A stretch of 43,509 nt of DNA from Guillardia theta CCMP2712 (GCF_000315625.1 NW_005434556.1:44579-88087); one strand, 5' to 3'; shown: positions 10,074-33,475, counted from the first letter of the stretch. The notes: a model not told the origin generated them from the letters alone. A program made the numbers and translations.

Positions 10074-10288
10074 TGCTTGTGCTCCCTCCTGCCTCCTTCC
10101 GTCCAGCTCTCGTCTCCCTACCAGCCTCCTGCTGCGCCTTAGTCGAGCCTTTGCTCAGACCCTTGGCAGGTGATATGGAAGGGACCGGCGGCGGCAGAGT
10201 CTTCGCGCTCTTCCCGGCTTGGACATCCTTGAGGCCGGGACGAGGGGGAGGTTTGTTTCAGAGAGGCAGACACCGGCTTGGGATCTGA
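10074..10288 (-). pseudogene. Captured CEP162 exon fragment (copy of ~7349-7559); recurs as a copy of ~7314-7559 at ~13630, 17660, 21442, 24701, 27824 and 31837
   Basis: Near-exact nucleotide match to 7314-7559. A 4-bp gttt duplication frameshifts all copies except unit 5. Confidence 0.93.
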
Positions 10289-10510
10289 GGCCCTTGCCCA
10301 CGACGAGCTTCTCGCGACGACATCTACAAGCCTTGTAGGCGGCAAGCAAGCGCCACTCCTAGCAGACTGACGGCTGACGGCAGGCCCGGTCCAAAGCATA
10401 GCCAGACCGTCTCCCACCATCCCTGCTACTCGTGCGCTAGAGGCCGGGTGAGCATGGTGCAGATGTCTGTCTTTCGCGTGCTCTTCATGTACAAGCCCTG
10501 GTCTAGAGTC

Positions 10511-11554
10511 CTACCGACTCTCTCTACGGGACGGTCGGGACTGACGAGCCGGGGCCGGGCGTCCGATCGACCTACACTCGAAGCATTGCGATCGCTGCTG
10601 GGCGTGCTGGCAGAGCACTATCTCTCCTGCACTCCCGGCGAAGAGAGCGGCGAGGTCGGTGCCGGCAGAGAGCATGTGGGCGACGTCTGGCGGGGGCTGG
10701 GGGCCGAGGCAGGCGGGGGAGCTTGCAGCGGGAGACAGCCTGCAGTCCTTGCATGTAGATCGCCTCCGGGCATGGATACAGATGCTGGCTCCCCCGCACT
10801 CCTTGCACTGAGATCGTATCCGCCCATGGGCACAGATGCTGGCTCCCCCGCACTCCTTGCACTGAGATCGTCTCCGCCCATGGGTACAGATGCTGGCTCC
10901 CCCGCACTCCTTGCAGCAAGATCGCTGGCGCCCATGGGCACAGATGCTGGCTCCCCCGCACTCCTTGCACTTATCTCGCTCGCGCCCATGGGCACAGATG
11001 CTGACTCCCCCGCACTCCTTGCACTTAGCTCGCTGGCGCTGATGGATACAGATGCTGGCTCCCCCGCACTCCTTGCACTGAGATCGCTGGCGCCCATGGG
11101 TACAGATGCTGGCTCCCCCGCAATCCTTGCACTTAGCTCGCTCGCGCTGATGGGTACAGATGCTGGCTCCCCCGCACTCCTTGCACTTAGCTCGCTCCCG
11201 CCCATGGGTGCAGATGCTGGCTCCCCCGCACTCCTTGCACTTATCTCGCTGGCGCCCATGGGTACAGATGCTGGCTCCCCCGCACTCCTTGCACTGAGAT
11301 CGCCTGCGCCCATGGGCACAGATGCTGGCTCCCCCGCACTCCTTGCATCGAGATCGTATCCGCCCGTGCTCGCATGCCTTCCCGGATCCTGTCTGCTTTC
11401 TTCCCCCTCCCGGCTGGGCGTCGCCTGCTGCCAGCTTCGTCTCGTGGGCTCCTCCTGGCCCCGCGGAGCTCTCTGTCCTCGCTCGCTTGCTGCGAGGGCG
11501 GGAGGGGCTGGAGGAGCCTCGCGCCATGTCTCGCGTCAGGATCAGCGCAAACAT
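10511..11554 (-). CDS. Cys/His zinc-repeat protein, copy 1 (12 repeats, 347 aa)
   Basis: Open ORF with a basic N-terminus (RPRSKRAR), CxHx6CxxC 18-aa repeats at 10742-11374 and a distal CQHAQQRSQCFEC unit. Confidence 0.85.
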   Translation of the reverse strand: MFALILTRDMARGSSSPSRPRSKRARTESSAGPGGAHETKLAAGDAQPGGGRKQTGSGKACEHGRIRSRCKECGGASICAHGRRRSQCKECGGASICTHGRQRDKCKECGGASICTHGRERAKCKECGGASICTHQRERAKCKDCGGASICTHGRQRSQCKECGGASICIHQRQRAKCKECGGVSICAHGRERDKCKECGGASICAHGRQRSCCKECGGASICTHGRRRSQCKECGGASICAHGRIRSQCKECGGASICIHARRRSTCKDCRLSPAASSPACLGPQPPPDVAHMLSAGTDLAALFAGSAGEIVLCQHAQQRSQCFECRSIGRPAPARQSRPSRRESR

Positions 11555-14115
11555 GCCGTCTGGTGTGCGGTACCGGTGAGGGTCGGGCTGGGGTAGTGAG
11601 AGGGACGCGCAGGGGGTACAGAGGGGGAAGAAGGAGGGGTAGGGGCGGAGGGTACCGGTGGGGGGGTAGGGGGGGATGGAGAAAAAGGCGGGAAGATGAA
11701 AGTTTGTGGGTTGGTAGGGGAGGGTATCACAGCTATGACCTGATAGAGGTCTGCTACGAGGTGTCCTAGGACCCGGGGCCTGTGGGGCGGGCCCAACAAC
11801 CCGAGAGAGGCAGTAGAGTCAAGGACAAGGTTGAGTGTGACCCGTCAGGGTAGGAGATGACGGACACACAGCACTCGCTCCTTCACCACCGGCACTCTCA
11901 CTCTTGTATGATCCCCTCGGTGCGAAACCCACGATACAGCCACACGCTCAGCTCAGGGCACGAGCTGCTGTCGGTATCGGTGAGGTGCAGATGCGTCGAG
12001 TCCGCGTGTGGGTCGAGGACCGCGTTCCCAAGAAGCTCAAAGGGTCATGAGTAGGCAACACAACAGCAGTGTGTTGTGACGATGGCGAGTGTGATCAAAG
12101 AGTGAGAGAGAGGCAGAGCAGGAGGTGTGTTTTATTTGAGAGAAGGTGCCGAGATCGTCTCAGTGCCAATGAGTTGCAAATGACAAAGAAAGCGGGACTT
12201 TCAGATCAGGATTGAGAGAAAGGGAAATGAGTCAGCGATAGTTTCCTGATGCTGGTCTGTGATGGAGAGAGGGTCGCCCAGTGGCAGAGCAGCGGCAATA
12301 GTCAACGCACCCGCAGAGAGCCAGAGCCAGAGAGAGCACACAGGACCCCCGTCCTTCTCCTGACCAAGTGCGGGGAAAGGACCCCTCATCAGTACTGCTC
12401 GTACGCCAAAATGGATTGGAGGAAAGCCAACTCTTCGTCGTCATCTCTCAACATGGTACCACCCCGTCTCACTGAGCTCCTTGGCCAGAGGAGCCTCGCG
12501 AGATAAGCTAGAGAGTTGCTACTCTATCAGCACTACTACCCCCGGGTGCTACCTCAGAGCTAACAGTCTACAGCTGACTACCGGTGCTCTTGAGCTCGAT
12601 TCACACTTGACTCCAAAGGTCAGCTGGCGTGCTCACCGACCTTACTTGGCAGGAATCAGAGCCAACCGTCGTCACACCAGCATCTCGATCCATCGTGACA
12701 AGCAAGTCACAACAGAGCGATACTCTAGCGTACTTGAAGGAGGGTCTATCCCCTCCCTACCCTCCTCCAGCCCCAGCCGCCAGGTGTGAGGGAGGGTTGA
12801 CGGGAGGTCTAGGGGTAGGGAGGGAGATAGGGACGGGAGAGGAGAGCAGGCAAGACAAAGAGGCAGGGGGGAAGTCAAACGGCTCATGCTCGATGCCTCA
12901 ATGCAACGGGGATAGGAGAGGAAGCACAAGGGAAACTCGTCGCAAGGCTCACCCGAGACGTGGCTCCCTTCATAGTCCAGCTCCCCAAGCGACAGAGGCC
13001 CTCGGGTCTTGCCCCTTCCATCCCCTCACTCCATTCTTACACCTCACATGCCTTGCTCTCCTTCCTTCCTCCGCGGCAAGAGCTAAGCACACCCCTGCAT
13101 TCCCCTGCTGCAGACCAGGTAGGGTCTGTGCCCCGGTGCGACCCAAGGAGACGACGAGGCAGTCCTTGAGGTGCTTCAGAGGGTCCTTGCGAGGCTTGAG
13201 ACCCGGTTGTTCTCCTGCTTGCTACCACCCCCCTCGCCTCCACAAGCCCCGTCACACCCCTGCTTCCACCCCGAAGGAGGCCGCAGGGTCCTCAGCCGGC
13301 AGGGGTGTTCCGTGTAGGGAACACCGGTAGGGCCGTTGGCCGGGGCTTGACAGCAGGGCCCCGTCAGGGTCCCTCCCCACAGACGGGTACCGCAATGGAG
13401 GCCGGCAAGGGGGGGGAGATAGGTAGGGTAGGGAAGTGAAGTAGACGTCATCGAGCTGCGTTGACTAGATCACTACCAGCATGCGCTCGTCTCTCCTGCT
13501 CGCTAGCACATGACCAGCACTTGCTCGCGTGCCTGGTGCTGGTGCTGGTGCCGGGTAGGTTGCGGGAGATCGTAGCCTTGACCCGAGGGCCGGAGCTGAC
13601 TGCGGTGTAGGGATGACTCAACGCACGGCAGCTCTCCCTCGACCCATCCCCTTCCCGTGACACCTTGCTTGTGCTCCCTCCTGCCTCCTTCCGTCCAGCT
13701 CTCGTCTCCCTACCAGCCTCCTGCTGCGCCTTAGTCGAGCCTTTGCTCAGACCCTTGGCAGGTGATATGCAAGGGGCCGGCGGCGGCAGAGTCTTCGCGC
13801 TCTTCCCGGCTTGGACATCCTTGAGGCCGGGACGAGGGGGAGGTTTGTTTAAGAGAGGCAGACTCCGGCTTGGGATCTGAGGCCCTTGCCCACGACGAGC
13901 TTCTCGCGACGACGTCTACAAGCCTTGTAGGCGGCAAGCAAGCGCCACTCCAAGCAGACTGACGGCTGACGGCAGGCCCGGTCCAAAGCAGAGCCAGACC
14001 GTCTCCCACCATCCCTGCTACTCGTGCGCTAGAGGCCGGGTGAGCATGGTGCAGATGTCTGTCTTTCGCGTGCTCTTCATGTACAAGCCCTGGTCTAGAG
14101 TCCTACCGACTCTCT

Positions 14116-15291
14116 CTACGGGACGGTCGGGAGGCGTCCGATCGACCTACACTCGAAGCATTGCGATCGCTGCTGGGCGTGCTGGCAGAGCACTATCTCT
14201 CCTGCACTCCCGGCGATGAGAGCGGCGAGGTCGGTGCCGGCAGAGAGCATGTGGGCGACGTCTGGCGGGGGCTGGGGGCCGAGGCAGGCGGGAGAGCTTG
14301 CAGCGGGAGACAGCCTGCAGTCCTTGCACTTAGATCGCCTCAGCGCATGGAAACAGATGCTGGCTCCCCCGCACTCCTTGCACTGAGATCGCTGGCGCCC
14401 ATGGATGCAGATGCTGGCTCCCCTGCACTCCTTGCACTTAGCTCGCTCCCGTCCATGGATACAGATGCTGGCTCCCCCGCACTCCTTGCACTGGGATCGT
14501 ATCCGCCCATGGGTACAGATGCTGGCTCCCCCGCACTCCTTGCACTTAGCTCGTTCGCGCCCATGGGTACAGATGCTGGCTCCCCCGCACTCCTTGCACT
14601 GAGATCGCCTCCGCGCATGAATGCAGATGCTGGCTCCCCCGCACTCCTTGCATGTAGATCGCTGGCGCTGATGGGCACAGATGCTGGCTCCCCCGCACTC
14701 CTTGCAGAAAGATCGCTCCCGCCCATGGGCACAGATGCTGGCTCCCCCGCACTCCTTGCACCTAGCTCGCTGGCGCTCATGGGTACAGATGCTGGCTCCC
14801 CCGCACTCCTTGCACTGAGATCGTCTCCGCCCATGGATGCAGATGCTGGCTCCCCCGCACTCCTTGCACTGAGATCGCCTCCGCCCATGGGTACAGATGC
14901 TGGCTCCCCCGCACTCCTTGCACTTATCTCGCTCCCGCCCATGGGTACAGATGCTGGCTCCCCCGCACTCCTTGCAGAAAGATCGCTCCCGCCCATGGGC
15001 ACAGATGCTGGCTCCCCCGCACTCCTTGCACTTAGCTCGCTCCCGCCCATGGGCACAGATGCTGGCTCCCCCGCACTCCTTGCACTGAGATCGTATCCGC
15101 CCGTGCTCGCATGCCTTCCCGGATCCTGTCTGCTTTCTTCCCCCTCCCGGCTGGGCGTCGCCTGCTGCCAGCTTCGTCTCGTGGGCTCCTCCTGGCCCCG
15201 CGGAGCTCTCTGTCCTCGCTCGCTTGCTGCGAGGGCGGGTGGGGCTGGAGGAGCCTCGCGCCATGTCTCGCGTCAGGATCAGCGCAAACAT
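14116..15291 (-). CDS. Cys/His zinc-repeat protein, copy 2 (15 repeats, 391 aa, short C-terminus)
   Basis: ATG of MFALIL at 15291; repeats at 14317-15111; ends GRLPTVP*. Confidence 0.85.
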   Translation of the reverse strand: MFALILTRDMARGSSSPTRPRSKRARTESSAGPGGAHETKLAAGDAQPGGGRKQTGSGKACEHGRIRSQCKECGGASICAHGRERAKCKECGGASICAHGRERSFCKECGGASICTHGRERDKCKECGGASICTHGRRRSQCKECGGASICIHGRRRSQCKECGGASICTHERQRARCKECGGASICAHGRERSFCKECGGASICAHQRQRSTCKECGGASICIHARRRSQCKECGGASICTHGRERAKCKECGGASICTHGRIRSQCKECGGASICIHGRERAKCKECRGASICIHGRQRSQCKECGGASICFHALRRSKCKDCRLSPAASSPACLGPQPPPDVAHMLSAGTDLAALIAGSAGEIVLCQHAQQRSQCFECRSIGRLPTVP

Positions 15292-18134
15292 GCCGTCTGG
15301 TGTGCGGTACCGGTGAGGGTCGGGCTGGGGTAGTGAGAGGGACGCACAGGGGGTACAGAGGAGGGAGAAGGATGGGTAGAAGAGGGTACAGAGGGGGGAG
15401 CAGGAGGGGTAGGAGGGATTGTGTGTAAGGGGGTAGCGAGCTGTACTGGGGTAGGGGCGGAGGGTACCGATGGGGGGGGGGGGGTAGGGGGGTGGAGAAA
15501 AAGGCGGGAAGATGAAAGTTTGTGGGTTGGTAGGGGAGGGTATCACAGCTATGACCTGATCGAGGTCTGCTACGAGCTGTCCTAGGACCCGGGGCCTGTC
15601 GGGCGGGCCCAACAACCCGAGAGAGGCAGTAGAGTCAAGGACAAGGTTGAGTGTGACCCGTCAGGGTAGGAGATGACGGACACACAGCACTCGCTCCTTC
15701 ACCACCGGCACTCTCACTCTTGTATGATCCCCTCGGTGCGAAACCCACGATACAGCCACACGCTCAGCTCAGGGCACGAGCTGCTGTCGGTATCGGTGAG
15801 GTGCAGATGCGTCGAGTCCGCGTGTGGGTCGAGGACCGCGTTCCCAAGAAGCTCAAAGGGTCATGAGGACGCAACACAACAGCAGTGTGTTGTGACGATG
15901 GCGAGTGTGATCAAAGAGTGAGAGAGAGGCAGAGCAGGAGGTGTGTTTTATTTGAGAGAAGATGCCGAGAACGTCTCAGTGCCAATGAGTTGCAAATGAC
16001 AAAGAAAGCGGGACTTTCAGATCAGGATTGAGAGAAAGGGAAATGAGTCAGCGATAGTTTCCTGATGCTGGTCTGTGATGGAGAGAGGGTCGCCCAGTGG
16101 CAGAGCAGCGGCAATAGTCAACGCACCCGCAGAGAGCCAGAGCCAGAGAGAGCACACAGGACCCCCGTCCTTCTCCTGACCAAGTGCGGGGAAAGGACCC
16201 CTCATCAGTACTGCTCGTACGCCAACATGGATTGGAGGAAAGCCAACTCTTCGTCGTCATCTCTCAACATGGTACCACCCCGTCTCACTGAGCTCCTTGG
16301 CCAGAGGAGCCTCGCGAGATAAGCTAGAGAGTTGCTACTCTATCAGCACTACTACCCCCGGGTGCTACCTCAGAGCTAACAGTCTACAGCTGACTACCGG
16401 TGCTCTTGAGCTCGATTCACACTTGACTCCAAAGGTCAGCTGGCGTGCTCACCGACCTTACTTGGCAGGAATCAGAGCCAACCGTCGTCACACCAGCATC
16501 TCGATCCATGGTGACAAGCAAGTCACAACAGAGCGATACTCTAGCGTACTTGAAGGAGGGTCTATCCCCTCCCTACCCTCCTCCAGCCCCAGCCGCCAGG
16601 TGTGAGGGAGGGGGTTGACGGGAGGTCTAGGGGTAGGGAGGGAGATAGGGACGGGAGAGGAGAGCAGGCAAGACAAAGAGGCAGGGGGGAAGTCAAACGG
16701 CTCATGCTCGATGCCTCAACGCAACGGGGATAGGAGAACACACACAAGCGTTGAGGGAAGCATAAGGGAAACTCGTCGCAAGGCTCACCCGAGACGTGGC
16801 TCCCTTCATAGTCCAGCTCCCCAAGCGACAGAGGCCCTCGGGTCTTGCCCCTTCCATCCCCTCACTCCATTCTTACACCTCACATGCCTTGCTCTCCTTC
16901 CTTCCTCCGCGGCAAGAGCTAAGCACACCCCTCCATTCCCCTGCTGCAGACCAGGTAGGGTCTGTGCCCCGGTGCGACCCAAGGAGACGACGAGGCAGTC
17001 CTTGAGGTGCTTCAACCGGTAAGGCCGTTGGCCGGGGCCTGACAGCAGGGCCCCTTCAGGGTCCCTTCCCACAGACGGGTACCGCAATGGAGGCCGGCAA
17101 GGGGGGGGGGAGATAGGTAGGGTAGGGAAGTGAAGTAGACGTCATCGAGCTGCGTTGACTAGATCACTACCAGCATGCGCTCGACTCTCCTGCTCGCTAG
17201 CACATGACCAGCACTTGCTCGCGTGCCTGGTGCTGGTGCTGGTGCCGGGTAGGTTGCGGGAGATCGTAGACGGATGGCGGTACGGACATGGAGGACGTCG
17301 GCATGGCGCGGTGTGAGACAGACAGGCCTGCATGGGTCAGCTGGCATCGATCGACTTGCGTGGAGCAGCCGCACGAGCGTCCTCCTCCTCTACGCGCGCG
17401 GGGGGCAAGAAGCGAGAGGCTGCTCGAAGGCTCCTTGCCTTGCGTGCAGGAGCTCCGTCGGTGGAGGGTCTTGATCGTGAGAGAAGCCCCACCCCTTGCA
17501 TCCGGTGGACATGATCTGTACCTCCACCATCAGACCTCGAGGAGGTGTGCGGTATGAGCCTTGACCCGAGGGCCGGAGCGGACTGCGGTGTAGGGAGAGC
17601 TCCTCGACTAGCGTCGATGCCGGAGCTGACTGCGGTGTAGGGATGACTCAACGCACGGCAGCTCTCCCTCGACCCATCCCCTTCCCGTGACACCTTGCTT
17701 GTGCTCCCTCCTGCCTCCTTCCGTCCAGCTCTCGTCTCCCTACCAGCCTCCTGCTGCGCCTTAGTCGAGCCTTTGCTCAGACCCTTGGCAGGTGATATGG
17801 AAGGGACCGGCGGCGGCAGAGTCTTCGCGCTCTTCCCGGCCCTTGGACATCCTTGAGGCCGGGACGAGGGGGAGGTTTGTTTCAGAGAGGCAGACTCCGG
17901 CTTGGGATCTGAGGCCCTTGCCCACGACGAGCTTCTCGCGACGACGTCTACAAGCCTTGTAGGCGGCAAGCAAGCGCCACTCCTAGCAGACTGACGGCTG
18001 ACGGCAGGCCCGGTCCGAAGCATAGCCAGACCGTCTCCCACCATCCCTGCTACTCGTGCGCTAGAGGCCGGGTGAGCATGGTGCAGATGTCTGTCTTTCG
18101 CGTGCTCTTCATGTACAAGCCCTGGTCTAGAGTC

Positions 18135-19124
18135 CTACCGACTCTCTCTACGGGACGGTCGGGACTGACGAGCCGGGGCCGGGCGTCCGATCGACCTACA
18201 CTCGAAGCATTGCGATCGCTGCTGGGCGTGCTGGCAGAGCACTATCTCTCCTGCACTCCCGGCGAAGAGAGCGGCGAGGTCGGTGCCGGCAGAGAGCATG
18301 TGGGCGACGTCTGGCGGGGGCTGGGGGCCGAGGCAGGCGGGAGAGCTTGCAGCGGGAGGCAGCCTGCAGTCCTTGCATGTAGATCGCCTCCGCCCATGGA
18401 TACAGATGCTGGCTCCCCCGCACTCCTTGCATTGAGATCGTATCCGCCCATGGGCACAGATGCTGGATCCCCCGCACTCCTTGCACTTAGCTCGCTGGCG
18501 CGCATGGGTACAGATGCTGGCTCCCCCGCACTCCTTGCACTGAGATCGCTGGCGCCCATGGGTACAGATGCTGGCTCCCCCGCACTCCTTGCACTTATCT
18601 CGCAGGCGCTGATGGATGCAGATGCTGGCTCCCCCGCACTCCTTGCATCGAGATCGCTGGCGCTGATGGATGCAGATGCTGGCTCCCCCGCACTCCTTGC
18701 ACTTAGCTCGCTCCCGCCCATGGGTACAGATGCTGGATCCCCCGCACTCCTTGCACTTAGCTCGCTCGCGCTGATGGATGCAGATGCTGGATCCCCCGCA
18801 CTCCTTGCACTTATCTCGCTGGCGCCCATGGGTACAGATGCTGGCTCCCCCGCACTCCTTGCATCGAGATCGCAGGCGCTGATGGATGCAGATGCTGGCT
18901 CCCCCGCACTCCTTGCACTTAGCTCGCTCCCGCCCGTGCTCGCATGCCTTCCCGGATCCTGACTGCTTTCCTCCTCTTCCCGGCTGGGCCTCGCCTGCTG
19001 CCAGCTTCGTCTCGTGGGCTCCTCCTGGCCTCGCGGAGCTCTCTGTCCTCGCTCGCTTGCTGCGAGGGCGGGAGGGGCTGGAGGAGCCTCGCGCCATGTC
19101 TCGCGTCAGGATCAGCGCAAACAT
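18135..19124 (-). CDS. Cys/His zinc-repeat protein, copy 3 (11 repeats, 329 aa)
   Basis: Open ORF; repeats at 18366-18944. Confidence 0.85.
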   Translation of the reverse strand: MFALILTRDMARGSSSPSRPRSKRARTESSARPGGAHETKLAAGEAQPGRGGKQSGSGKACEHGRERAKCKECGGASICIHQRLRSRCKECGGASICTHGRQRDKCKECGGSSICIHQRERAKCKECGGSSICTHGRERAKCKECGGASICIHQRQRSRCKECGGASICIHQRLRDKCKECGGASICTHGRQRSQCKECGGASICTHARQRAKCKECGGSSICAHGRIRSQCKECGGASICIHGRRRSTCKDCRLPPAASSPACLGPQPPPDVAHMLSAGTDLAALFAGSAGEIVLCQHAQQRSQCFECRSIGRPAPARQSRPSRRESR

Positions 19125-21927: not shown

Positions 21928-22833
21928 CTACGGGACGGTCGGGAGGCGTCCGATCGACCTACACTCGAAGCATTGCGATCGCTGCTGGGCGTGCTGGCAG
22001 AGCACTATCTCTCCTGCACTCCCGGCGAAGAGAGCGGCGAGGTCGGTGCCGGCAGAGAGCATCTGGGCGACGTCTGGCAGGGGCTGGGGGCCGAGGCAGG
22101 CGGGGGGGCTTGCAGCGGGAGACAGCCTGCAGTCCTTGCATGTAGATCGCCTCCGCGCATGGATACAGATGCTGGCTCCCCCGCACTCCTTGCATCGAGA
22201 TCGTATCCGCGCATGGGTACAGATGCTGGATCCCCCGCACTCCTTGCACTGAGATCGTCTCCGCGCATGGGTACAGATGCTGGCTCCCCCGCACTCCTTG
22301 CACTGAGATCGTCTCCGCCCATGGGTACAGATGCTGGCTCCCCCGCACTCCTTGCACTTAGCTCGCTGGCGCCCATGGATGCAGATGCTGGCTCCCCCGC
22401 ACTCCTTGCACTTAGCTCGCTCCCGCCCATGGGCACAGATGCTGGCTCCCCCGCACTCCTTGCACTTATCTCGCTGGCGCCCATGGGCACAGATGCTGGC
22501 TCCCCCGCACTCCTTGCACTTAGCTCGCTCCCGCCCATGGGTACAGATGCTGGCTCCCCCGCACTCCTTGCATCGAGATCGCCTGCGCCCATGGGTACAG
22601 ATGCTGGCTCCCCCGCACTCCTTGCACTGAGATCGTATCCGCCCGTGCTCGCATGCCTTCCCGGATCCTGACTGCTTTCTTCCCCCTCCAGGCTGGGCCT
22701 CGCCTGCTGCCAGCTTCGTCTCGTGGGCTCCTCCTGGCCCCGTGGAGCTCTCTGTCCTCGCTCGCTTGCTGCGAGGGCGGGAGGGGCTGGAGGAGCCTCG
22801 CGCCATGTCTCGCGTCAGGATCAGCGCAAACAT
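21928..22833 (-). CDS. Cys/His zinc-repeat protein, copy 4 (10 repeats, 301 aa, short C-terminus)
   Basis: ATG at 22833; repeats at 22129-22653. Confidence 0.85.
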   Translation of the reverse strand: MFALILTRDMARGSSSPSRPRSKRARTESSTGPGGAHETKLAAGEAQPGGGRKQSGSGKACEHGRIRSQCKECGGASICTHGRRRSRCKECGGASICTHGRERAKCKECGGASICAHGRQRDKCKECGGASICAHGRERAKCKECGGASICIHGRQRAKCKECGGASICTHGRRRSQCKECGGASICTHARRRSQCKECGGSSICTHARIRSRCKECGGASICIHARRRSTCKDCRLSPAASPPACLGPQPLPDVAQMLSAGTDLAALFAGSAGEIVLCQHAQQRSQCFECRSIGRLPTVP

Positions 22834-25158
22834 GCCGTCTGGTGTGCGGTACCGGTGAGGGTCGGGCTGGGGTAGTGAGAGGGACGCGCAGGGGGTACAG
22901 AGGGGGGAGAAGGAGGGGTAGGGGCGGAGGGTACAGGTAGGGGGGGGGTAGGGGGGTAGGGGGATGGAGAAAAAGGCGGGAAGATGAAAGTTTGTGGGTT
23001 GGTAGGGGAGGGCTATCACAGCTATGACCTGATAGAGGTCTGCTACGAGGTGTCCTAGGACCCGGGGCCTGTCGGGCGGGCCCAACAACCCGAGAGAGGC
23101 AGTAGAGTCAAGGACAAGGTTGAGTGTGACCCGTCAGGGTAGGAGATGACGGACACACAGCACTCGCTCCTTCACCACCGGCACTCTCACTCTTGTATGA
23201 TCCCCTCGGTGCGAAACCCACGATACAGCCACACGCTCAGCTCAGGGCACGAGCTGCTGTCGGTATCGGTGAGGTGCAGATGCGTCGAGTCCGCGTATGG
23301 GTCGAGGACCGCGTTCCCAAGAAGCTCAAAGGGTCATGAGGACGCAACACAACAGCAGTGTGTTGTGACGATGGCGAGTGTGATCAAAGAGTGAGAGAGA
23401 GGCAGAGCAGGAGGTGTGTTTTATTTGAGAGAAGATGCCGAGATCGTCTCAGTGCCAATGAGTTGCAAATGACAAAGAAAGCGGGACTTTCAGATCAGGA
23501 TTGAGAGAAAGGGAAATGAGTCAGCGATAGTTTCCTGATGCTGGTCTGTGATGGAGAGAGGGTCGCCCAGTGGCAGAGCAGCGGCAATAGTCAACGCACC
23601 CGCAGAGAGCCAGAGCCAGAGAGAGCACACAGGACCCCCGTCCTTCTCCTGACCAAGTGCGGGGAAAGGACCCCTCATCAGTACTGCTCGTACGCCAACA
23701 TGGATTGGAGGAAAGCCAACTCTTCGTCGTCATCTCTCAACATGGTACCACCCCGTCTCACTGAGCTCCTTGGCCAGAGGAGCCTCGCGAGATAAGCTAG
23801 AGAGTTGCTACTCTATCAGCACTACTACCCCCGGGTGCTACCTCAGAGCTAAGAGTCTACAGCTGACTACCGGTGCTCTTGAGCTCGATTCACACTTGAC
23901 TCCAAAGGTCAGCTGGCGTGCTCACCGACCTTACTTGGCAGGAATCAGAGCCAACCGTCGTCACACCAGCATCTCGATCCATGGTGACAAGCAAGTCACA
24001 ACAGAGCGATACTCTAGCGTACTTGAAGGAGGGTCTATCCCCTCCCTACCCTCCTCCAGCCCCAGCCGCCAGGTGTGAGGGAGGGGGTTGACGGGAGGTC
24101 TAGGGGTAGGGAGGGAGATAGGGACGGGAGAGGAGAGCAGGCAAGACAAAGAGGCAGGGGGGAAGTCAAACGGCTCATGCTCGATGCCTCAATGCAACGG
24201 GGATAGGAGAACACACACAAGCGTTGAGGGAAGCACAAGGGAAACTCGTCGCAAGGCTCACCCGAGACGTGGCTCCCTTCATAGTCCCAGCATGCACATG
24301 ACCAGCACTTGCTCGCGTGCCTGGTGCTGGTGCCGGGTAGGTTGCTGGAGAGCGCAGACGGATGGCGGTACGGACATGGAGGACGTCGGCATGGCGCGGT
24401 GTGAGACAGACAGGCCTGCATGGGTCTGCTGGCATCCATCGACTTGCGTGTAGCAGCCGCACGAGCGTCCTCCTCCTCTTCGCGCGCGGGGGGCAAGAAG
24501 CGTGAGGCTGCTCGAAGGCTCCTTGCCTTGCGTGCAGGAGCTCGGTCGGTGGAGGGTCTTGATCGTGAGAGAAGCCCCACCCCTTGCATCCGGTGGACAT
24601 GATCTGTACCTCCACCATCAGACCTCGAGGAGGTGTGCGGTATGAGCCTTGACCCGAGGGCCGGAGCTGACTGCGGTGTAGGGATGACTCAACGCACGGC
24701 AGCTCTCCCTCGACCCATCCCCTTCCCGTGACACCTTGCTTGTGCTCCCTCCTGCCTCCTTCCGTCCAGCTCTCGTCTCCCTACCAGCCTCCTGCTGCGC
24801 CTTAGTCGAGTCTTTGCTCAGACCCTTGGCAGGTGATATGCAAGGGGCCGGCGGCGGCAGAGTCTTCGCGCTCTTCCCGGCTTGGACATGCTTGAGGCCG
24901 GGACGAGGGGGAGGTTTCAGAGAGGCAATCACCGGCTTGGGATCTGAGGCCCTTGCCCACGACGAGCTTCTCGCGACGACGTCTACAAGCCTTGTAGGCG
25001 GCAAGCCAAGCAGGCTGACGGCTGACGGCAGGCCCGGTCCGAAGCATAGCCAGACCGTCTCCCACCATCCCTGCTACTCGTGCGCTAGAGGCTGGGTGAG
25101 CATGGTGCAGATGTCTGTCTTTCGCGTGCTCTTCATGTACAAGCCCTGGTCTAGAGTC

Positions 25159-25716
25159 CTACCGACTCTCTCTACGGGACGGTCGGGACTGACGGGCCGG
25201 GGCCGGGCGTCCGATCGACCTACACTCGAAGCATTGCGATCGCTGCTGGGCGTGCTGGCAGAGCACTATCTCTCCTGCACTCCCGGCGAAGAGAGCGGCG
25301 AGGTCGGTGCCGGCAGAGAGCATCTGGGCGACGTCTGGCGGGGGCTGGGGGCCGAGGCAGGCGGGGGAGCTTGCAGCGGGAGACAGCCTGCAGTCCTTGC
25401 ATGAAGATCGCCTCCGGGCATGGATGCAGATGCTGGCTCCCCCGCACTCCTTGCACTGAGATCGCCTGCGCCCATGGGCACAGATGCTGGCTCCCCCGCA
25501 CTCCTTGCATCGAGATCGTATCCGCCCGTGCTCGCATGCCTTCCCGGATCCTGTCTGCTTTCTTCCCCCTCCCGGCTGGGCCTCGCCTGCTGCCAGCTTC
25601 ATCTCGTGGGCTCCTCCTGGCCCCGTGGAGCTCTCTGTCCTCGCTCGCTTGCTGCGAGGGCGGGAGGGGCTGGAGGAGCCTCGCGCCATGTCTCGCGTCA
25701 GGATCAGCGCAAACAT
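25159..25716 (-). CDS. Cys/His zinc-repeat protein, copy 5 (3 repeats, 185 aa; collapsed array)
   Basis: Open ORF; repeats at 25390-25536. Confidence 0.8.
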   Translation of the reverse strand: MFALILTRDMARGSSSPSRPRSKRARTESSTGPGGAHEMKLAAGEAQPGGGRKQTGSGKACEHGRIRSRCKECGGASICAHGRRRSQCKECGGASICIHARRRSSCKDCRLSPAASSPACLGPQPPPDVAQMLSAGTDLAALFAGSAGEIVLCQHAQQRSQCFECRSIGRPAPARQSRPSRRESR

Positions 25717-28310
25717 GCCGTCTGGTGTGCGGTACCGGTGAGGGTCGGGCTGGGGTAGTGAGAGGGACGCGCAGGGGGTACAGAGAGGGCAGAAGGAGGG
25801 GTAGGGGTGGAGGGTACCGGGTTAGGGGAGGGGTAGGGGGGTAGGGGGATGGAGAAAAAGGCGGGAAGATGAAAGTTTGTGGGTTGGTAGGGGAGGGTAT
25901 CACAGCTATGACCTGATAGAGGTCTGCTACGAGGTGTCCTAGGACCCGGGGCCTGTCGGGCGGGCCCAACAACCCGAGAGAGGCAGTAGAGTCAAGGACA
26001 AGGTTGAGTGTGACCCGTCAGGGTAGGAGATGACGGACACACAGCACTCGCTCCTTCACCACCGGCACTCTCACTCTTGTATGATCCCCTCGGTGCGAAA
26101 CCCACGATACAGCCACACGCTCAGCTCAGGGCACGAGCTGCTGTCGGTATCGGTGAGGTCCAGATGCGTCGAGTCCGCGTGTGGGTCGAGGACCGCGTTC
26201 CCAAGAAGCTCAAAGGGTCATGAGTAGGCAACACAACAGCAGTGTGTTGTGACGAGGGCGATTGTGATCAAAGAGTCAGAGAGAGGCAGAGCAGGAGGTG
26301 TGTTTTATTTGAGAGAAGATGCCGAGATCGTCTCAGTGCCAATGAGTTGCAAATGACAAAGAAAGCGGGACTTTCAGATCAGGATTGAGAGAAAGGGAAA
26401 TGAGTCAGCGATAGTTTCCTGATGCTGGTCTGTGATGGAGAGAGGGTCGCCCAGTGGCAGAGCAGCGGCAATAGTCAACGCACCCGCAGAGAGCCAGAGC
26501 CAGAGAGAGCACACAGGACCCCCGTCCTTCTCCTGACCAAGTGCGGGGAAAGGACCCCTCATCAGTACTGCTCGTACGCCAACATGGATTGGAGGAAAGC
26601 CAACTCTTCGTCGTCATCTCTCAACATGGTACCACCCCGTCTCACTGAGCTCCTTGGCCAGAGGAGCCTCGCGAGATAAGCTAGAGAGTTGCTACTCTAT
26701 CAGCACTACTACCCCCGGGTGCTACCTCAGAGCTAAGAGTCTACAGCTGACTACCGGTGCTCTTGAGCTCGATTCACACTTGACTCCAAAGGTCAGCTGG
26801 CGTGCTCACCGACCTTACTTGGCAGGAATCAGAGCCAACCGTCGTCACACCAGCATCTCGATCCATGGTGACAAGCAAGTCACAACAGAGCGATACTCTA
26901 GCGTACTTGAAGGAGGGTCTATCCCCTCCCTACCCTCCTCCAGCCCCAGCCGCCAGGTGTGAGGGAGGGGGTTGACGGGAGGTCTAGGGGTAGGGAGGGA
27001 GATAGGGACGGGAGAGGAGAGCAGGCAAGACAAAGAGGCAGGGGGGAAGTCAAACGGCTCATGCTCGATGCCTCAACGCAACGGGGATAGGAGAACACAC
27101 ACAAGCGTTGAGGGAAGCACAAGGGAAACTCGTCGCAAGGCTCATCCGAGACGTGGCTCCCTTCATAGTCCAGCTCCCCAAGCGACAGAGGCCCTCGGGT
27201 CTTGCCCCTTCCATCCCCTCACTCCATTCTTACACCTCACATGCCTTGCTCTCCTTCCTTCCTCCGCGGCAAGAGCTAAGCACACCCCTGCATTCCCCTG
27301 CTGCAGACCAGGTAGGGTCTGTGCCCCGGTGCGACCCAAGGAGACGACGAGGCAGTCCTTGAGGTGCTTCAGAGGGTCCTTGCGAGGCTTGAGACCCGGT
27401 TGTTCTCCTGCTTGCTACCACCCCCCTCGCCTCCACAAGCCCCGTCACACCCCTGCTTCCACCCCGAAGGAGGCCGCAGGGTCCTCAGCCGGCAGGGGTG
27501 TTCCGTGTAGGGAACACCGGTAGGGCCGTTGGCCGGGGCCTGACAGCAGGGCCCCGTCAGGGTCCCTCCCCACAGACGGGTACCGCAATGGAGGCCGGCA
27601 AGGGGGGGAGAGATAGGTAGGGTAGGGAAGTGAAGTAGACGTCATCGAGCTGCGTTGACTAGATCACTACCAGCATGCGCTCGACTCTCCTGCTCGCTAG
27701 CACATGACCAGCACTTGCCCGCGTACCTGGTGCTGGTGCTGGTGCCGGGTAGGTTGCGGGAGATCGTAGCCTTGACCCGAGGGCCGGAGCTGACCGCGGT
27801 GTAGGGATGACTCAACGCATGGCAGCTCTCGCTCGACCCATTCCCTTCCCGTGACACCTTGCTTGTGCTCCCTCCTGCCTCCTTCCGTCCAGCTCTCGTC
27901 TCCCTACCAGCCTCCTGCTGCGCCTTAGTCGAGCCTTTGCTCAGACCCTTGGCAGGTGATATGCAAGGGGCCGGCGGCGGCAGAGTCTTCGCGCTCTTCC
28001 CGCCTTGGACATGCTTGAGGCCGGGACGAGGGGGAGGTTTGTTTCAGAGAGGCAGACTCCGGCTTGGGATCTGAGGCCCTTGCCCACGACGAGCTTCTCG
28101 CGACGACGTCTACAAGCCTTGTAGGCGGCAAGCAAGCGCCACTTCTCCTAGCAGACTGACGACTGACGGCAGGCCCGGTCAAGCAGAGCCAGACCGTCTC
28201 CCACCATCCCTGCTACTCGTGCGCTAGAGGCCGGGTGAGCATGGTGCAGATGTCTGTCTTTCGCGTGCTCTTCATGTACAAGCCCTGGTCTAGAGTCCTA
28301 CCGACTCTCT

Positions 28311-29432
28311 CTACGGGACGGTCGGGAGGCGTCCGATCGACCTACACTCGAAGCATTGCGATCGCTGCTGGGCGTGCTGGCAGAGCACTATCTCTCCTGC
28401 ACTCCCGGCGAAGAGAGCGGCGAGGTCGGTGCCGGCAGAGAGCATGTGGGCGACGTCTGGCGGGGGCTGGGGGCCGAGGCAGGCGGGGGGGCTTGCAGCG
28501 GGAGGCAGCCTGCAGTCCTTGCATGTAGATCGCCTCCGGGCATGGGTACAGATGCTGGCTCCCCCGCACTCCTTGCATCGAGATCGCTGGCGCCCATGGG
28601 TACAGATGCTGGCTCCCCCGCACTCCTTGCACTTAGCTCGCTCCCGTCCATGGGCACAGATGCTGGCTCCCCCGCACTCCTTGCACTGGGATCGTATCCG
28701 CCCATGGGCACAGATGCTGGCTCCCCCGCACTCCTTGCACTTATCTCGCTGGCGCTGATGGGTACAGATGCTGGCTCCCCCGCACTCCTTGCACTGAGAT
28801 CGCCTCCGCGCATGGATGCAGATGCTGGATCCCCCGCACTCCTTGCATGTAGATCGCCTGCGCCCATGGGCACAGATGCTGGCTCCCCCGCACTCCTTGC
28901 ATCGAGATCGCTTGCGCTGATGGATGCAGATGCTGGCTCCCCCGCACTCCTTGCACTTAGCTCGCTGGCGCTCATGGGTACAGATGCTGGCTCCCCCGCA
29001 CTCCTTGCACTGAGATCGCCTCCGCCCATGGATGCAGATGCTGGCTCCCCCGCAATCCTTGCACTGAGATCGCCTGCGCCCATGGGTACAGATGCTGGCT
29101 CCCCCGCACTCCTTGCAGAAAGATCGCTCCCGCCCATGGGTACAGATGCTGGCTCCCCCGCACTCCTTGCACTTAGCTCGCTGGCGCTGATGGGCACAGA
29201 TGCTGGCTCCCCCGCACTCCTTGCACTGAGATCGCTCCCGCCCGTGCTCGCATGCCTTCCCGGATCCTGACTGCTTTCTTCCCCCTCCCGGCTGGGCCTC
29301 GCCTGCTGCCAGCTTCGTCTCGTGGGCTCCTCCTGGCCCCGCGGAGCTCTCTGTCCTCGCTCGCTTGCTGCGAGGGCGGGAGGGGCTGGAGGAGCCTCGC
29401 GCCATGTCTCGTGTCAAGATCAGCGCAAACAT
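28311..29432 (-). CDS. Cys/His zinc-repeat protein, copy 6 (14 repeats, 373 aa, short C-terminus)
   Basis: Open ORF; repeats at 28512-29252. Confidence 0.85.
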   Translation of the reverse strand: MFALILTRDMARGSSSPSRPRSKRARTESSAGPGGAHETKLAAGEAQPGGGRKQSGSGKACEHGRERSQCKECGGASICAHQRQRAKCKECGGASICTHGRERSFCKECGGASICTHGRRRSQCKDCGGASICIHGRRRSQCKECGGASICTHERQRAKCKECGGASICIHQRKRSRCKECGGASICAHGRRRSTCKECGGSSICIHARRRSQCKECGGASICTHQRQRDKCKECGGASICAHGRIRSQCKECGGASICAHGRERAKCKECGGASICTHGRQRSRCKECGGASICTHARRRSTCKDCRLPPAASPPACLGPQPPPDVAHMLSAGTDLAALFAGSAGEIVLCQHAQQRSQCFECRSIGRLPTVP

Positions 29433-32307
29433 GCCGTCTGGTGTGCGGTACCGGTGAGGGTCGGGCTGGGGTAGTGAGAGGGACGCGCAGGGGGTACAGA
29501 GAGGGCAGAAGGAGGGGTAGGGGCGGAGTGTACCGTGGGGAGGGGTAGGGGGGGGGTGGAGAAAAAGGCGGGAAGATGAAAGTTTGTGGGTTGGTAGGGG
29601 AGGGCTATCACAGCTATGACCTGATAGAGGTCTGCTACGAGCTGTCCTAGGACCCGGGGCCTGTCGGGCGGGCCCAACAACCCGAGAGAGGCAGTAGAGT
29701 CAAGGACAAGGTTGAGTGTGACCCGTCAGGGTAGGAGATGACGGACACACAGCACTCGCTCCTTCACCACCGGCACTCTCACTCTTGTATGATCCCCTCG
29801 GTGCGAAACCCACGATACAGCCACACGCTCAGCTCAGGGCACGAGCTGCTGTCGGTATCGGTGAGGTGCAGATGCGTCGAGTCCGCGTGTGGGTCGAGGA
29901 CCGCGTTCCCAAGAAGCTCAAAGGGTCATGAGGACGCAACACAACAGCAGTGTGTTGTGACGATGGCGAGTGTGATCAAAGAGTGAGAGAGAGGCAGAGC
30001 AGGAGGTGTGTTTTATTTGAGAGAAGATGCCGAGATCGTCTCAGTGCCAATGAGTTGCAAATGACAAAGAAAGCGGGACTTTCAGATCAGGATTGAGAGA
30101 AAGGGAAATGAGTCAGCGATAGTTTCCTGATGCTGGTCTGTGATGGAGAGAGGGTCGCCCAGTGGCAGAGCAGCGGCAATAGTCAACGCACCCGCAGAGA
30201 GCCAGAGCCAGAGAGAGCACACAGGACCCCCGTCCTTCTCCTGACCAAGTGCGGGGAAAGGACCCCTCATCAGTACTGCTCGTACGCCAACATGGATTGG
30301 AGGAAAGCCAACTCTTCGTCGTCATCTCTCAACATGGTACCACCCCGTCTCACTGAGCTCCTTGGCCAGAGGAGCCTCGCGAGATAAGCTAGAGAGTTGC
30401 TACTCTATCAGCACTACTACCCCCGGGTGCTACCTCAGAGCTAAGAGTCTACAGCTGACTACCGGTGCTCTTGAGCTCGATTCACACTTGACTCCAAAGG
30501 TCAGCTGGCGTGCTCACCGACCTTACTTGGCAGGAATCAGAGCCAACCGTCGTCACACCAGCATCTCGATCCATGGTGACAAGCAAGTCACAACAGAGCG
30601 ATACTCTAGCGTACTTGAAGGAGGGTCTATCCCCTCCCTACCCTCCTCCAGCCCCAGCCGCCAGGTGTGAGGGAGGGGGTTGACGGGAGGTCTAGGGGTA
30701 GGGAGGGAGATAGGGACGGGAGAGGAGAGCAGGCAAGACAAAGAGGCAGGGGGGAAGTCAAACGGCTCATGCTCGATGCCTCAACGCAACGGGGATAGGA
30801 GAACACACACAAGCGTTGAGGGAAGCACAAGGGAAACTCGTCGCAAGGCTCACCCGAGACGTGGCTCCCTTCATAGTCCAGCTCCCCAAGCGACAGAGGC
30901 CCTCGGGTCTTGCCCCTTCCATCCCCTCACTCCATTCTTACACCTCACATGCCTTGCTCTCCTTCCTTCCTCCGCGGCAAGAGCTAAGCACACCCCTGCA
31001 TTCCCCTGCTGCAGACCAGGTAGGGTCTGTGCCCCGGTGCGACCCAAGGAGACGACGAGGCAGTCCTTGAGGTGCTTCAGAGGGTCCTTGCGAGGCTTGA
31101 GACCCGGTTGTTCTCCTGCTTGCTACCACCCCCCTCGCCTCCACAAGCCCCGTCACACCCCTGCTTCCACCCCGAAGGAGGCCGCAGGGTCCTCAGCCGG
31201 CAGGGGTGTTCCGTGTAGGGAACACCGGTAGGGCCGTTGGCCGGGGCCTGACAGCAGGGCCCCGTCAGGGTCCCTCCCCACAGACGGGTACCGCAATGGA
31301 GGCCGGCAAGGGGGGGGGAGATAGGTAGGGTAGGGAAGTGAAGTAGACGTCATCGAGCTGCGTTGACTAGATCACTACCAGCATGCGCTCGTCTCTCCTG
31401 CTCGCTAGCACATGACCAGCACTTGCTCGCGTGCCTGGTGCTGGTGCCGGGTAGATTGCGGGAGATCGTAGACGGATGGCGGTACGGACATGGAGGACGT
31501 CGGCATGGCGCGGTGTGAGACAGGCAGGCCTGCATGGGTCTGCTGGAATCGATCGACTGCGTGGAGCAGCCGCACGAGCGTCCTCCTCCTCTACGCGCGC
31601 AGGGGGCAAGAAGCGTGAGGCTGCTCGAAGGCTCCTTGCCTTGCGTGCAGGAGCTCCGTCGGTGGAGGGTCTTGATCGTGAGAGAAGCCCCACCCCTTGC
31701 GTCCGGTGGACATGATCTGTACCTCCACCATCAGACCTCGAGGAGGTGTGCGGTATGAGCCTTGGCGTAGGGATAGCTCCTCGACTAGTGTCCATGCCGG
31801 AGCTGACTGCGGTGTAGGGATGACTCAACGCACGGCAGCTCTCGCTCGACCCATCCCCTTCCCGTGACACCTTGCTTGTGCTCCCTCCTGCCTCCTTCCG
31901 TCCAGCTCTCGTCTCCCTACCAGCCTCCTGCTGCGCCTTAGTCGAGTCTTTGCTCAGACCCTTGGCAGGTGATATGCAAGGGGCCGGCGGCGGCAGAGTC
32001 TTCGCGCTCTTCCCGGCTTGGACATGCTTGAGGCTGGGACGAGGGGGAGGTTTGTTTCAGAGAGGCAGACTCCGGCTTGGGATCTGAGGCCCTTGCCCAC
32101 GACGAGCTTCTCGCGACGACATCTACAAGCCTTGTAGGCGGCAAGCAAGCGCCACTCCTAGCAGACTGACGGCTGACGACAGGCCCGGTCAAGCAGAGCC
32201 AGACCGTCTCCCACTATCCCTGCTACTCGTGCGCTAGAGGCCGGGTGAGCATGGTGCAGATGTCTGTCTTTCGCGTGCTCTTCATGTACAAGCCCTGGTC
32301 TAGAGTC

Positions 32308-33189
32308 CTACCGACTCTCTCTACGGGACGGTCGGGACTGACGAGCCGGGGCCGGGCGTCCGATCGACCTACACTCGAAGCATTGCGATCGCTGCTGGGC
32401 GTGCTGGCAGAGCACTATCTCTCCTGCACTCCCGGCGAAGAGAGCGGCGAGGTCGGTGCCGGCAGAGAGCATGTGGGCGACGTCTGGCGGGGGCTGGGGG
32501 CCGAGGCAGGCGGGGGAGATTGCAGCGGGAGACAGCCTGCAGTCCTTGCATGTAGATCGCCTCCGCCCATGGATGCAGATGCTGGCTCCCCCGCACTCCT
32601 TGCACTGGGATCGCCTCCGCCCATGGATGCAGATGCTGGCTCCCCCGCACTCCTTGCATGTAGATCGCTCCCGCCCATGGGCACAGATGCTGGCTCCCCC
32701 GCACTCCTTGCACTGAGATCGTCTCCGCCCATGGGTACAGATGCTGGCTCCCCCGCACTCCTTGCATGTAGATCGTATCCGCCCATGGGCACAGATGCTG
32801 GCTCCCCCGCACTCCTTGCACTTAGCTCGCTCCCGCCCATGGGTACAGATGCTGGCTCCCCCGCACTCCTTGCACTTAGCTCGCTCCCGCCCATGGGTAC
32901 AGATGCTGGCTCCCCCGCACTCCTTGCATCGAGATCGCTTGCGCTGATGGATGCAGATGCTGGCTCCCCCGCACTCCTTGCACTGAGATCGCTCCCGCCC
33001 GTGCTCGCATGCCTTCCCGGATCCTGACTGCTTTCTTCCCCCTCCCGGCTGGGCCTCGCCTGCAGCCAGCTTCGTCTCGTGGGCTCCTCCTGGCCCCGCG
33101 GAGCTCTCTGTCCTCGCTCGCTTGCTGCGAGGGCGGGAGGGGCTGGAGGAGCCTCGCGCCATGTCTCGCGTCAGGATCAGCGCAAACAT
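32308..33189 (-). CDS. Cys/His zinc-repeat protein, copy 7 (9 repeats, 293 aa)
   Basis: ATG at 33189; repeats at 32539-33009. Confidence 0.85.
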   Translation of the reverse strand: MFALILTRDMARGSSSPSRPRSKRARTESSAGPGGAHETKLAAGEAQPGGGRKQSGSGKACEHGRERSQCKECGGASICIHQRKRSRCKECGGASICTHGRERAKCKECGGASICTHGRERAKCKECGGASICAHGRIRSTCKECGGASICTHGRRRSQCKECGGASICAHGRERSTCKECGGASICIHGRRRSQCKECGGASICIHGRRRSTCKDCRLSPAAISPACLGPQPPPDVAHMLSAGTDLAALFAGSAGEIVLCQHAQQRSQCFECRSIGRPAPARQSRPSRRESR

Positions 33190-33439
33190 GCCGTCTGGTG
33201 TGCGGTACCGGTGAGGGTCGGGCTGGGGTAGTGAGAGGGACGCGCAGGGGGTACAGAGGGGGAAGAAGGAGGGGTAGAGGGTACGGGTGTGAGGGGGTAG
33301 CGAGGTATACCGGGGTAGGGGCGGAGGGTACCGGTGGGTGTGTGTGGAGAAAAAGGCGGGAAGATGAAAGTTTGTGGGTTGGTAGGGGAGGGTATCACAG
33401 CTATGACCTGATCGAGGTCTGCTACGAGGTGTCCTAGGA

Positions 33440-33475
33440 CCCGGGTCAAAAAACTTTATTATAAACTTGACCCGG
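33440..33475. other. Inverted repeat/hairpin at the right array boundary
   Basis: ccgggtcaa-aaaac-tttattataaa-c-ttgacccgg: a 9-bp perfect outer stem with an inner AT palindrome. It abuts the 10-bp palindrome gtcctaggac. Confidence 0.75.

Follow-up and report, generated by a model that had tools for sequence, protein, structure and literature searches.

Seven near-identical Guillardia theta genes with reshuffled arrays of a predicted Cys3His mini zinc-finger repeat

What do seven neighboring genes encode when they resemble one another almost completely outside an internal tract of short Cys/His repeats, and how have those repeats come to be so thoroughly rearranged from copy to copy? The question is posed by a locus of Guillardia theta CCMP2712, which was analyzed within a window of 43,509 nucleotides (the whole stretch GCF_000315625.1 NW_005434556.1:44579-88087; positions are counted from its first letter unless another locus is named). 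Between positions 10511 and 33189 of the window, seven intronless open reading frames (ORFs) lie on the minus strand and share the start MFALILTRDMARGSS. Each contains an array of 18-amino-acid (18-aa) units. A preliminary description, made from the DNA sequence alone, had proposed that the seven proteins form a recombination-diversified repertoire of nucleic-acid readers. The reading that we consider probable, though by no means assured, is that of a young, recombination-shuffled cluster of seven array-only Cys3His mini zinc-finger genes with nucleic-acid-binding products.

The arrays of genes 1 to 7 contain 12, 15, 11, 10, 3, 14, and 9 units, respectively, for a total of 74 in exact 18-aa spacing. 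There are no stops and no frameshifts across the 74 units, and each of the seven arrays, as assembled, has its own order. ORF calls and unit counts therefore agree with the preliminary description, which had listed seven intact ORFs with these same numbers of repeats and no shared order. Tandem Repeats Finder independently recovered seven arrays with a period of 54 nucleotides (nt). The limits of the tandem array (~10074 and ~33445) were set where the homology of the flanks to the spacers stops; the G+C content is 0.59 to 0.64 in the array versus about 0.50 to 0.55 in the flanks. The array and its genes are arranged as follows.

10074..33445, minus strand: whole tandem array, seven units of 3.15-4.0 kb each (gene plus 2.3-2.9 kb spacer)
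10511..11554, minus strand: gene 1, 347 aa, 12 repeats (tract 10727-11374), long C-terminal ending
14116..15291, minus strand: gene 2, 391 aa, 15 repeats (tract 14302-15111), short ending (17-nt deletion, junction 14124-14139)
18135..19124, minus strand: gene 3, 329 aa, 11 repeats (tract 18351-18944), long ending
21928..22833, minus strand: gene 4, 301 aa, 10 repeats (tract 22114-22653), short ending
25159..25716, minus strand: gene 5, 185 aa, 3 repeats (tract 25375-25536), long ending
28311..29432, minus strand: gene 6, 373 aa, 14 repeats (tract 28497-29252), short ending
32308..33189, minus strand: gene 7, 293 aa, 9 repeats (tract 32524-33009), long ending

All seven proteins follow one layout, consisting of a 60-aa leader, the array of 18-aa units, ~40 aa of tail, and one isolated C-x-H-x6-C-x2-C module. 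The basic motif RPRSKRAR, which had been noted ahead of the repeat tract as resembling a nuclear localization signal, occupies residues 19 to 26 in 7/7 proteins; its counterpart in a paralogous cluster ~100 kb away is RARSKRPR. Judged by its residues, the motif may be a nuclear import signal. Near the 3′ end of the genes, a 17-nt insertion/deletion (indel) shifts the frame and yields two C-terminal endings, long in the odd-numbered genes and short in the even-numbered ones. The strict odd/even alternation of the 17-nt segment hints at a two-gene amplification unit; the spacer indels and single-nucleotide polymorphism (SNP) patterns do not follow this alternation of endings. The positions of these elements are given here.

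11477..11500, minus strand: basic motif RPRSKRAR, gene 1 copy
15214-15237, 19047-19070, 22756-22779, 25639-25662, 29355-29378, and 33112-33135, minus strand: RPRSKRAR, other six copies
10574..10612, minus strand: isolated C-x-H-x6-C-x2-C module (CQHAQQRSQCFEC), gene 1 copy, in the C-terminal tail ~40 aa past the array; present in 7/7 genes
10541-10557, 18165-18181, 25189-25205, and 32338-32354, minus strand: 17-nt segment of genes 1, 3, 5, and 7, missing from genes 2, 4, and 6

The 74 units comprise 67 full units and 7 terminal ones, the last unit of each array being degenerate past C13 (CKDCRL...). Cys1, His3, Arg5, Arg7, Cys10, and Cys13 are invariant in all 74 units, and C1, H3, R5, R7, C10, K11, C13, G15, S17, and I18 are invariant in 67/67 full units. 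The near-invariant scaffold of the preliminary description thus holds in the full units and breaks down after C13 in the seven terminal ones. The DNA core of ~29 nt reported there was found 67 times at ≤1 mismatch (57 exact matches) versus 0 occurrences expected. Variation in full units is located at positions 2 (T/A/I), 4 (G/Q/A/E), 6 (E/Q/R/I/L/K), 8 (S/A/D), and 9 (K/Q/R/T/F/C), which together yield 43 distinct combinations. These are the five positions named previously; of the residues listed for position 2, E is restricted to each gene's first unit and F to a single terminal unit.

First units, truncated last units, and the isolated C-terminal module each hold the complete C-x-H-x6-C-x2-C set. 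Because of this, the structural module is most likely the 13-residue C-x-H-x6-C-x2-C (Cys3His), predicted to hold one zinc ion, with G-G-[AS]-S-I serving as the linker. Other reading frames are also open across the repeats, yet there is no doubt about the coding frame; thousands of homologs (E values down to 1e-125) exist for the Cys/His frame alone. Five units were modeled with AlphaFold2 (AF2) from 120 in-register slices of family members; the model has a predicted local distance difference test (pLDDT) score of 92.3, an 18-residue periodicity, and almost no helix. It places a short helical turn at residues 7 to 9, directly ahead of the C-x2-C knuckle. Models of chlorophyte and Nucleocytoviricota clusters in the ESM Atlas have a matching shape, with template modeling (TM) scores of 0.82 to 0.84 and a root mean square deviation of ~2 Å over 95 residues.

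The unit is not peculiar to this locus. A word-indexed phmmer search returned >3,217 homologs at an E value of ≤1e-3 (best, 1e-125). An exhaustive profile search with five-repeat slices against 1.84 billion proteins returned 5,685 cluster representatives, counted at 50% clustering, at an E value of ≤1e-3 and 3,230 at ≤1e-10. The family is hosted by algae and by giant-virus metagenome-assembled genomes (MAGs), and in the same 87-Mb genome there are at least 347 matches on at least 30 contigs. The algal and giant-virus relatives to which the preliminary description had pointed were recovered by both searches and among IMG/VR loci. Family-wide, entropy is highest at positions 9 and 6, and R or K occupies positions 5 and 7. 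The window proteins share with the family the 18-residue period, the invariant C1/H3/C10/C13, the G-G after C13, sequence similarity, and the predicted fold. Neither Pfam, PHROGs, nor the PDB yielded a model or a relative of the 18-aa repeat, and no description of the motif was found in the literature searched. As predicted from sequence, the 18-residue Cys3His mini zinc-finger repeat is thus a large family that is shared by algae and giant viruses and lacks a Pfam model; documenting it is a result in its own right.

A second cluster lies ~100 kb away on the same contig (G000:C118, ~181-193 kb). Its genes have a homologous leader (MFALPWTGDMARSSSSPCRARSKRPR) and CPHGR-type units in 11, 26, and 36 copies, and the codons of the constant half of the unit are identical in the two clusters. 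In the 36-unit gene, a block of ~9 units is present three times, and block duplication therefore also builds arrays. A dispersed copy on another contig (G000:C81, ~326 kb) has a frameshifted leader and an array reduced to one terminal unit plus the isolated module, and is probably a decayed gene. The coordinates of these copies are given on their own loci.

L083:1707-2613, minus strand: gene of the second cluster
L084:1170-2925 and 5397-7692, plus strand: genes of the second cluster
L081:1836-2355, minus strand: dispersed, frameshifted copy

How the arrays diverge can be read from the contrast between the repeats and the DNA around them. The six spacers (2.3 to 2.9 kb) are 98 to 99% identical apart from a few large indels (144 to 558 nt); their differences include specific indels of 144, 421, and 558 nt and 53 singleton SNPs. 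Because of this identity, the duplication is very recent, or the copies have been held alike by conversion. The spacers contain no Pfam-recognizable ORF and are located as follows.

11555-14115: spacer 1
15292-18134: spacer 2
19125-21927: spacer 3
22834-25158: spacer 4
25717-28310: spacer 5
29433-32307: spacer 6

The flanking coding parts of the seven genes are 2.4 to 2.8% divergent. Repeats paired in the best repeat-level alignments diverge by 11.5% in codons 1 to 9 versus 0.8% in codons 10 to 18, and random pairs of units diverge by 25.5% in codons 1 to 9. All four gametes are present in 86/136 site pairs of the 27-nt variable half, only 7 singleton nucleotide variants occur among the repeats, and synonymous marker sites (codons 1, 3, and 5) are reshuffled almost like nonsynonymous sites (ratios of 0.34 versus 0.47). 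Therefore, the arrays have come to differ because unit variants from an older pool were deleted, duplicated, and re-assorted, and not through new point mutation. Individual genes illustrate the outcome. The first two repeats of gene 5 are nucleotide-identical to those of gene 1, and gene 5 looks like a deletion derivative of gene 1 that has lost nine internal units. Genes 2 and 6 are collinear over 13 aligned repeats, none of which is identical. The pattern that the preliminary description had likened to other repeat-based recognition proteins, a homogenized scaffold with variable residues diversified by recombination, is borne out by the uneven divergence of the two halves, the four-gamete pairs, and the scarcity of singletons.

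The constant half of the unit (27 to 29 nt) is identical in nearly all units and so provides unequal exchange and gene conversion with an obvious substrate. Through these processes, variable halves that were already present in the pool are lost, duplicated, and brought into new combinations, and the arrays are thereby altered much more rapidly than the DNA around them. The seven copies amount to a natural experiment in which the spacers differ by 1 to 2% and the arrays are almost wholly rearranged, so that array turnover can be set against the rate of neutral DNA.

Purifying selection on the scaffold is clear. Codons 1, 3, and 5 vary synonymously only (TGT/TGC, 46:21; CAT/CAC, 60:7; CGG/CGC, 37:30), and the Arg codon at position 7 is constant. 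Not one ligand has been lost in 74 units, versus ~6 to 10 nonsynonymous changes at ligand codons expected at the divergence of the spacers (P of about 0.003 to 5e-5, a rough Poisson estimate). Scaffold diversity is about 0.008 at nonsynonymous sites (pN) versus 0.13 at synonymous sites (pS). Positive selection at the variable sites was not supported. Diversity at these sites is about equal to synonymous diversity, a result compatible with diversifying selection and with unconstrained reshuffling alike, and synonymous markers are reshuffled to nearly the same degree as nonsynonymous ones. Per-codon Nei-Gojobori ratios are 3.5 to 4.9 at positions 2, 4, and 8, 0.5 to 0.7 at positions 6 and 9, and 1.5 overall.

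What the arrays might do is suggested by the domains to which they are joined in relatives. A conserved C-terminal domain stands behind the array in 68 of the 120 best homologs and at no fewer than 572 IMG/VR loci, many of them on contigs of giant-virus MAGs (GVMAGs). This domain opens with an A20-like zinc finger (PF01754), and in the part that follows, D, E, D, E, and H residues are invariant. An AF2 model of this second part (pLDDT, 86) matches only PD-(D/E)xK nucleases, including Hjc (E value, 7e-4), Bax1, McrC, the R2 retrotransposon endonuclease, and several restriction enzymes; the TM scores are modest (0.3 to 0.4), and the list is uniform. An HNH-like motif occurs in 7 of the 120 best homologs, and a Pfam HNH scan of two of them gave one weak match (E value, 0.036). 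Fusion partners in longer members include T5orf172/MUG113, ATP-dependent DNA ligase, chromo, and SWIM domains. The repeat number is 6, 9, 11, or 15 on viral nuclease-like tails with 84 to 96% identity to one another, and in a pair with 78% identical tails, the variable positions are 21% identical versus 69% for the scaffold. By analogy, such changes of array length and variable residues on related nuclease-like tails are the pattern that would be expected of a modular targeting array on an enzyme that cuts DNA, and they provide the chief, though indirect, support for recognition of nucleic acid. The window proteins themselves carry neither the A20-like finger with a PD-(D/E)xK domain nor the HNH-like motif of the nuclease-fused viral branch.

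Two further observations concern proteins with nuclease motifs. The family member P0058 combines an N-terminal HNH-like part with a C-terminal HNH motif and is labeled by NCBI as a protein of a Promethearchaeia archaeon MAG; a giant-virus or eukaryotic contig that was mis-binned is the likelier source. A partial resemblance in array shape (TM score of 0.56 over 60 residues) was found for a phage (Uroviricota) cluster of the ESM Atlas, 83% of whose members carry GIY-YIG, and similar mini-finger chains may, going by these models, serve phage homing endonucleases.

Because relatives are fused to DNA-cutting folds, we infer that the window proteins recognize nucleic acid. This part of the preliminary description is thus retained in an indirect form, through the fusions to PD-(D/E)xK-fold, HNH-like, T5orf172, DNA ligase, and chromo domains and through the net charge of the proteins (+19 to +41; isoelectric point, 9.3 to 10.4). 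DNA recognition appears to be the most likely function, and we favor it with some reserve. Each unit would bind one zinc ion, and the units would be strung into a highly basic chain in which R5, R7, and K11 are fixed. With the basic motif near the N terminus as import signal, the proteins would reach the nucleus, where their target would be nucleic acid, most likely DNA, and their specificity would be determined by the composition of the array. Having no effector domain, they would act as binders or blockers, in distinction to their giant-virus relatives, which have predicted nuclease domains behind the arrays.

Several findings weigh against this reading. The non-repeat coding parts contain 18 codons with amino acid changes versus 5 with synonymous changes only, which is about neutral (dN/dS, ~1), and the ratio (omega) for the leader is 0.74 to 1.09 relative to the paralogous cluster. 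A Pfam scan of three window proteins found no domain even at an E value of ≤1, and hence no effector domain, as the preliminary description had anticipated in reporting that a catalytic domain is lacking; a PHROGs scan had no match, and the C-terminal tails (70 to 90 aa) had no Pfam match and no [IVL]x[IV]DExxH or DHxxP motif. Neither Foldseek nor VIA-align wide found a solved structure like the five-repeat model (0 chains at Z ≥2), and a PDB sequence search gave only chance matches to nanobodies (E value, >0.5). Some of the fusions in relatives, namely, RING and OTU, point to roles at the protein level, and a fusion to a starch-binding domain also occurs. The DNA binding, zinc binding, and localization of family members are all predicted properties. 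In an RNA-sequencing run with the same species label (X5; the sample comprised ~6% of the run, or 764 million letters), four reads were found on 5,951 bases, all within spacers. An exact look-up of the seven proteins in a collection of 15 billion proteins found none, and the proteins therefore appear to be absent from the annotation. A 251-nt Logan contig from a 2019 run (X10), which is only guessed to be RNA, exactly matches the tail and last repeat of gene 1 (10559-10809). Transcription of the seven genes is thus close to nil in one RNA sample, and at the transcript level they are candidate genes.

The alternative that survives best, although we judge it unlikely, is that the cluster is a neutral and essentially silent recent amplification, in which the copies are intact only through their youth and the array differences reflect the instability of a functionless minisatellite. 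The high identity of the spacers, the omega of ~1 in the flanking coding parts, the near-equal reshuffling of synonymous markers, the near absence of RNA in X5, and the missing proteins in public sets all suit this explanation, as do the tolerance of a frameshifting 17-nt indel in 3/7 copies and the collapsed, frameshifted copy on another contig. It does not readily account for the complete retention of frame and ligands over 74 repeats or for the low pN of the scaffold relative to pS. The architecture is also kept in the second cluster, with its 11, 26, and 36 repeats, and in thousands of proteins elsewhere, and the X10 contig that matches gene 1 exactly may derive from a transcript.

Somewhat less probable again is that the proteins are functional but are not sequence-specific readers of DNA. 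They would instead be basic chains of zinc knuckles for binding RNA, single-stranded nucleic acid, or protein or for buffering metal. Short Cys/His knuckles of the retroviral CCHC type bind single-stranded nucleic acid, the window proteins consist of 7 to 12.5% Cys, and the RING, OTU, and starch-binding fusions, together with the failure of both structure searches to find an analog with DNA, are consistent with such a role. On the other hand, the dominant fusion partners are DNA-cleaving folds, array length shifts on otherwise conserved viral nuclease-like proteins, and a concentration of hypervariability at 2 to 5 sites in each unit, next to fixed arginines, is typical of base-reading arrays and not of bulk binders.

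That the repeat orders and counts are an assembly artifact of a collapsed or chimeric tandem repeat is highly improbable. In favor of an artifact, the units are 98 to 99% identical with internal 54-nt minisatellites, and Logan contigs of the 2011 DNA runs cover the spacers and break inside the arrays (depth of 0 to ~5 over 28674-29270). Against it, the spacers carry specific indels and singleton SNPs, the two types of ending alternate regularly, the independent 2019 contig reproduces the tail and last repeat of gene 1 exactly, and variable arrays are found family-wide, at other loci and in other organisms.

A decodable code in each unit we regard as possible but doubtful. Equally conjectural is the broadest form of the proposal, namely, that the 18-residue Cys3His unit might join C2H2 fingers and TALEs as the third kind of re-programmable DNA-recognition repeat found in nature. 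Residues 6, 8, and 9 (here also 2 and 4) would then specify bases, giant viruses would use the arrays to aim nucleases, and effector-less algal arrays would be reshuffled to new specificities, for example, against viral or transposon DNA. A role against viruses or transposons is speculation. If the proposal is true, the 18-residue unit would surpass every known natural programmable DNA-binding module in compactness, and thousands of natural variants would be available together with ready-made giant-virus nuclease fusions.

The flanks of the cluster contain ordinary host genes, and no obvious viral insert surrounds it. To the left, a 253-nt segment (7307-7559) is 96% identical to a segment in the array spacers; material of the left-flank locus is therefore repeated in each unit. 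A 51-nt tandem repeat of 6 copies (97% matches) occupies 9127-9432, outside the array and ~640 nt from its left limit (10074). To the right, one ORF ends in a C3HC4 RING finger (E value, 4e-9) and spans a 23-nt tandem repeat of 21 copies (35901-36381). The number 23 is not divisible by three; the repeat represents an intron or else a stretch that is read in each of the three frames. The two genes recognized on this side are listed here.

35614-36582, plus strand: RING-finger ORF
40707-41345, plus strand: concentrative (Na+-dependent) nucleoside transporter, N-terminal domain (PF01773; E value, 9e-21)

Among the known systems closest to the cluster are C2H2 arrays such as those of PRDM9 and KRAB-ZNF proteins. 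In both cases, zinc modules are encoded by minisatellites, the scaffold is homogenized at the DNA level, a few residues vary, turnover is fast, and the genes form clusters. The likeness is one of the way of working and not of homology. The C2H2 unit is 28 aa with the spacing C-x2-4-C-x12-H-x3-5-H, whereas that of the window is 18 aa with C-x-H-x6-C-x2-C, and the window proteins lack the beta-beta-alpha fold, a Pfam zf-C2H2 match, and SET or KRAB domains. Membership in the C2H2 family was ruled out on the grounds of the missing Pfam match and the 18-aa Cys3His unit.

TALE effectors of Xanthomonas and Ralstonia are similar in that their repeats are nearly identical apart from a handful of hypervariable positions, an import signal (putative in the window proteins) lies at the N terminus, and paralogs differ in array length. 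TALE repeats differ in being metal-free helical hairpins of 33 to 35 aa and in having two variable residues, a di-residue at positions 12/13, with a proven code of one repeat to one base, and there is no relation in sequence or fold. Membership was ruled out by the 18-aa period, the Cys/His basis of the unit, and the near absence of helix in the model. The CCHC zinc knuckle (PF00098; C-x2-C-x4-H-x4-C) was likewise excluded, as its ligands come in another order and at other distances and Pfam gave no match.

The EsV-1-7 motif (PF19114/IPR043822), known from Ectocarpus IMM, is a virus-associated, cysteine-rich putative zinc motif that occurs in tandem gene arrays in algae and is found without other Pfam domains (bioRxiv 10.1101/2024.02.19.579948; 10.64898/2026.04.27.720984). 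It resembles the present repeat in its association with viruses and its expansion in algal tandem arrays, and the two co-occur in a few viral proteins. It differs in having a 35-position profile with the spacing C-x4-C-x16-C-x2-H, and no match to three window proteins was obtained even at an E value of ≤1. PF19114 matched 4/219 of the homologs scanned; in the two that were examined, the match lies in the N-terminal leader (residues 5 to 38), outside the array. The differing ligand spacings of N terminus and array are seen side by side in P0028.

The restriction-like endonuclease of the R2 retrotransposon, with its N-terminal zinc fingers, and the GIY-YIG/HNH homing endonucleases offer a parallel to the giant-virus relatives, in which the array is followed by a PD-(D/E)xK-fold domain or an HNH-like motif. 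In contrast, the seven window genes have no nuclease domain, and the nuclease role of the relatives is predicted from sequence and model. The cluster thus resembles PRDM9/KRAB-ZNF or TALE in its evolutionary logic and belongs to neither of these groups nor to EsV-1-7.

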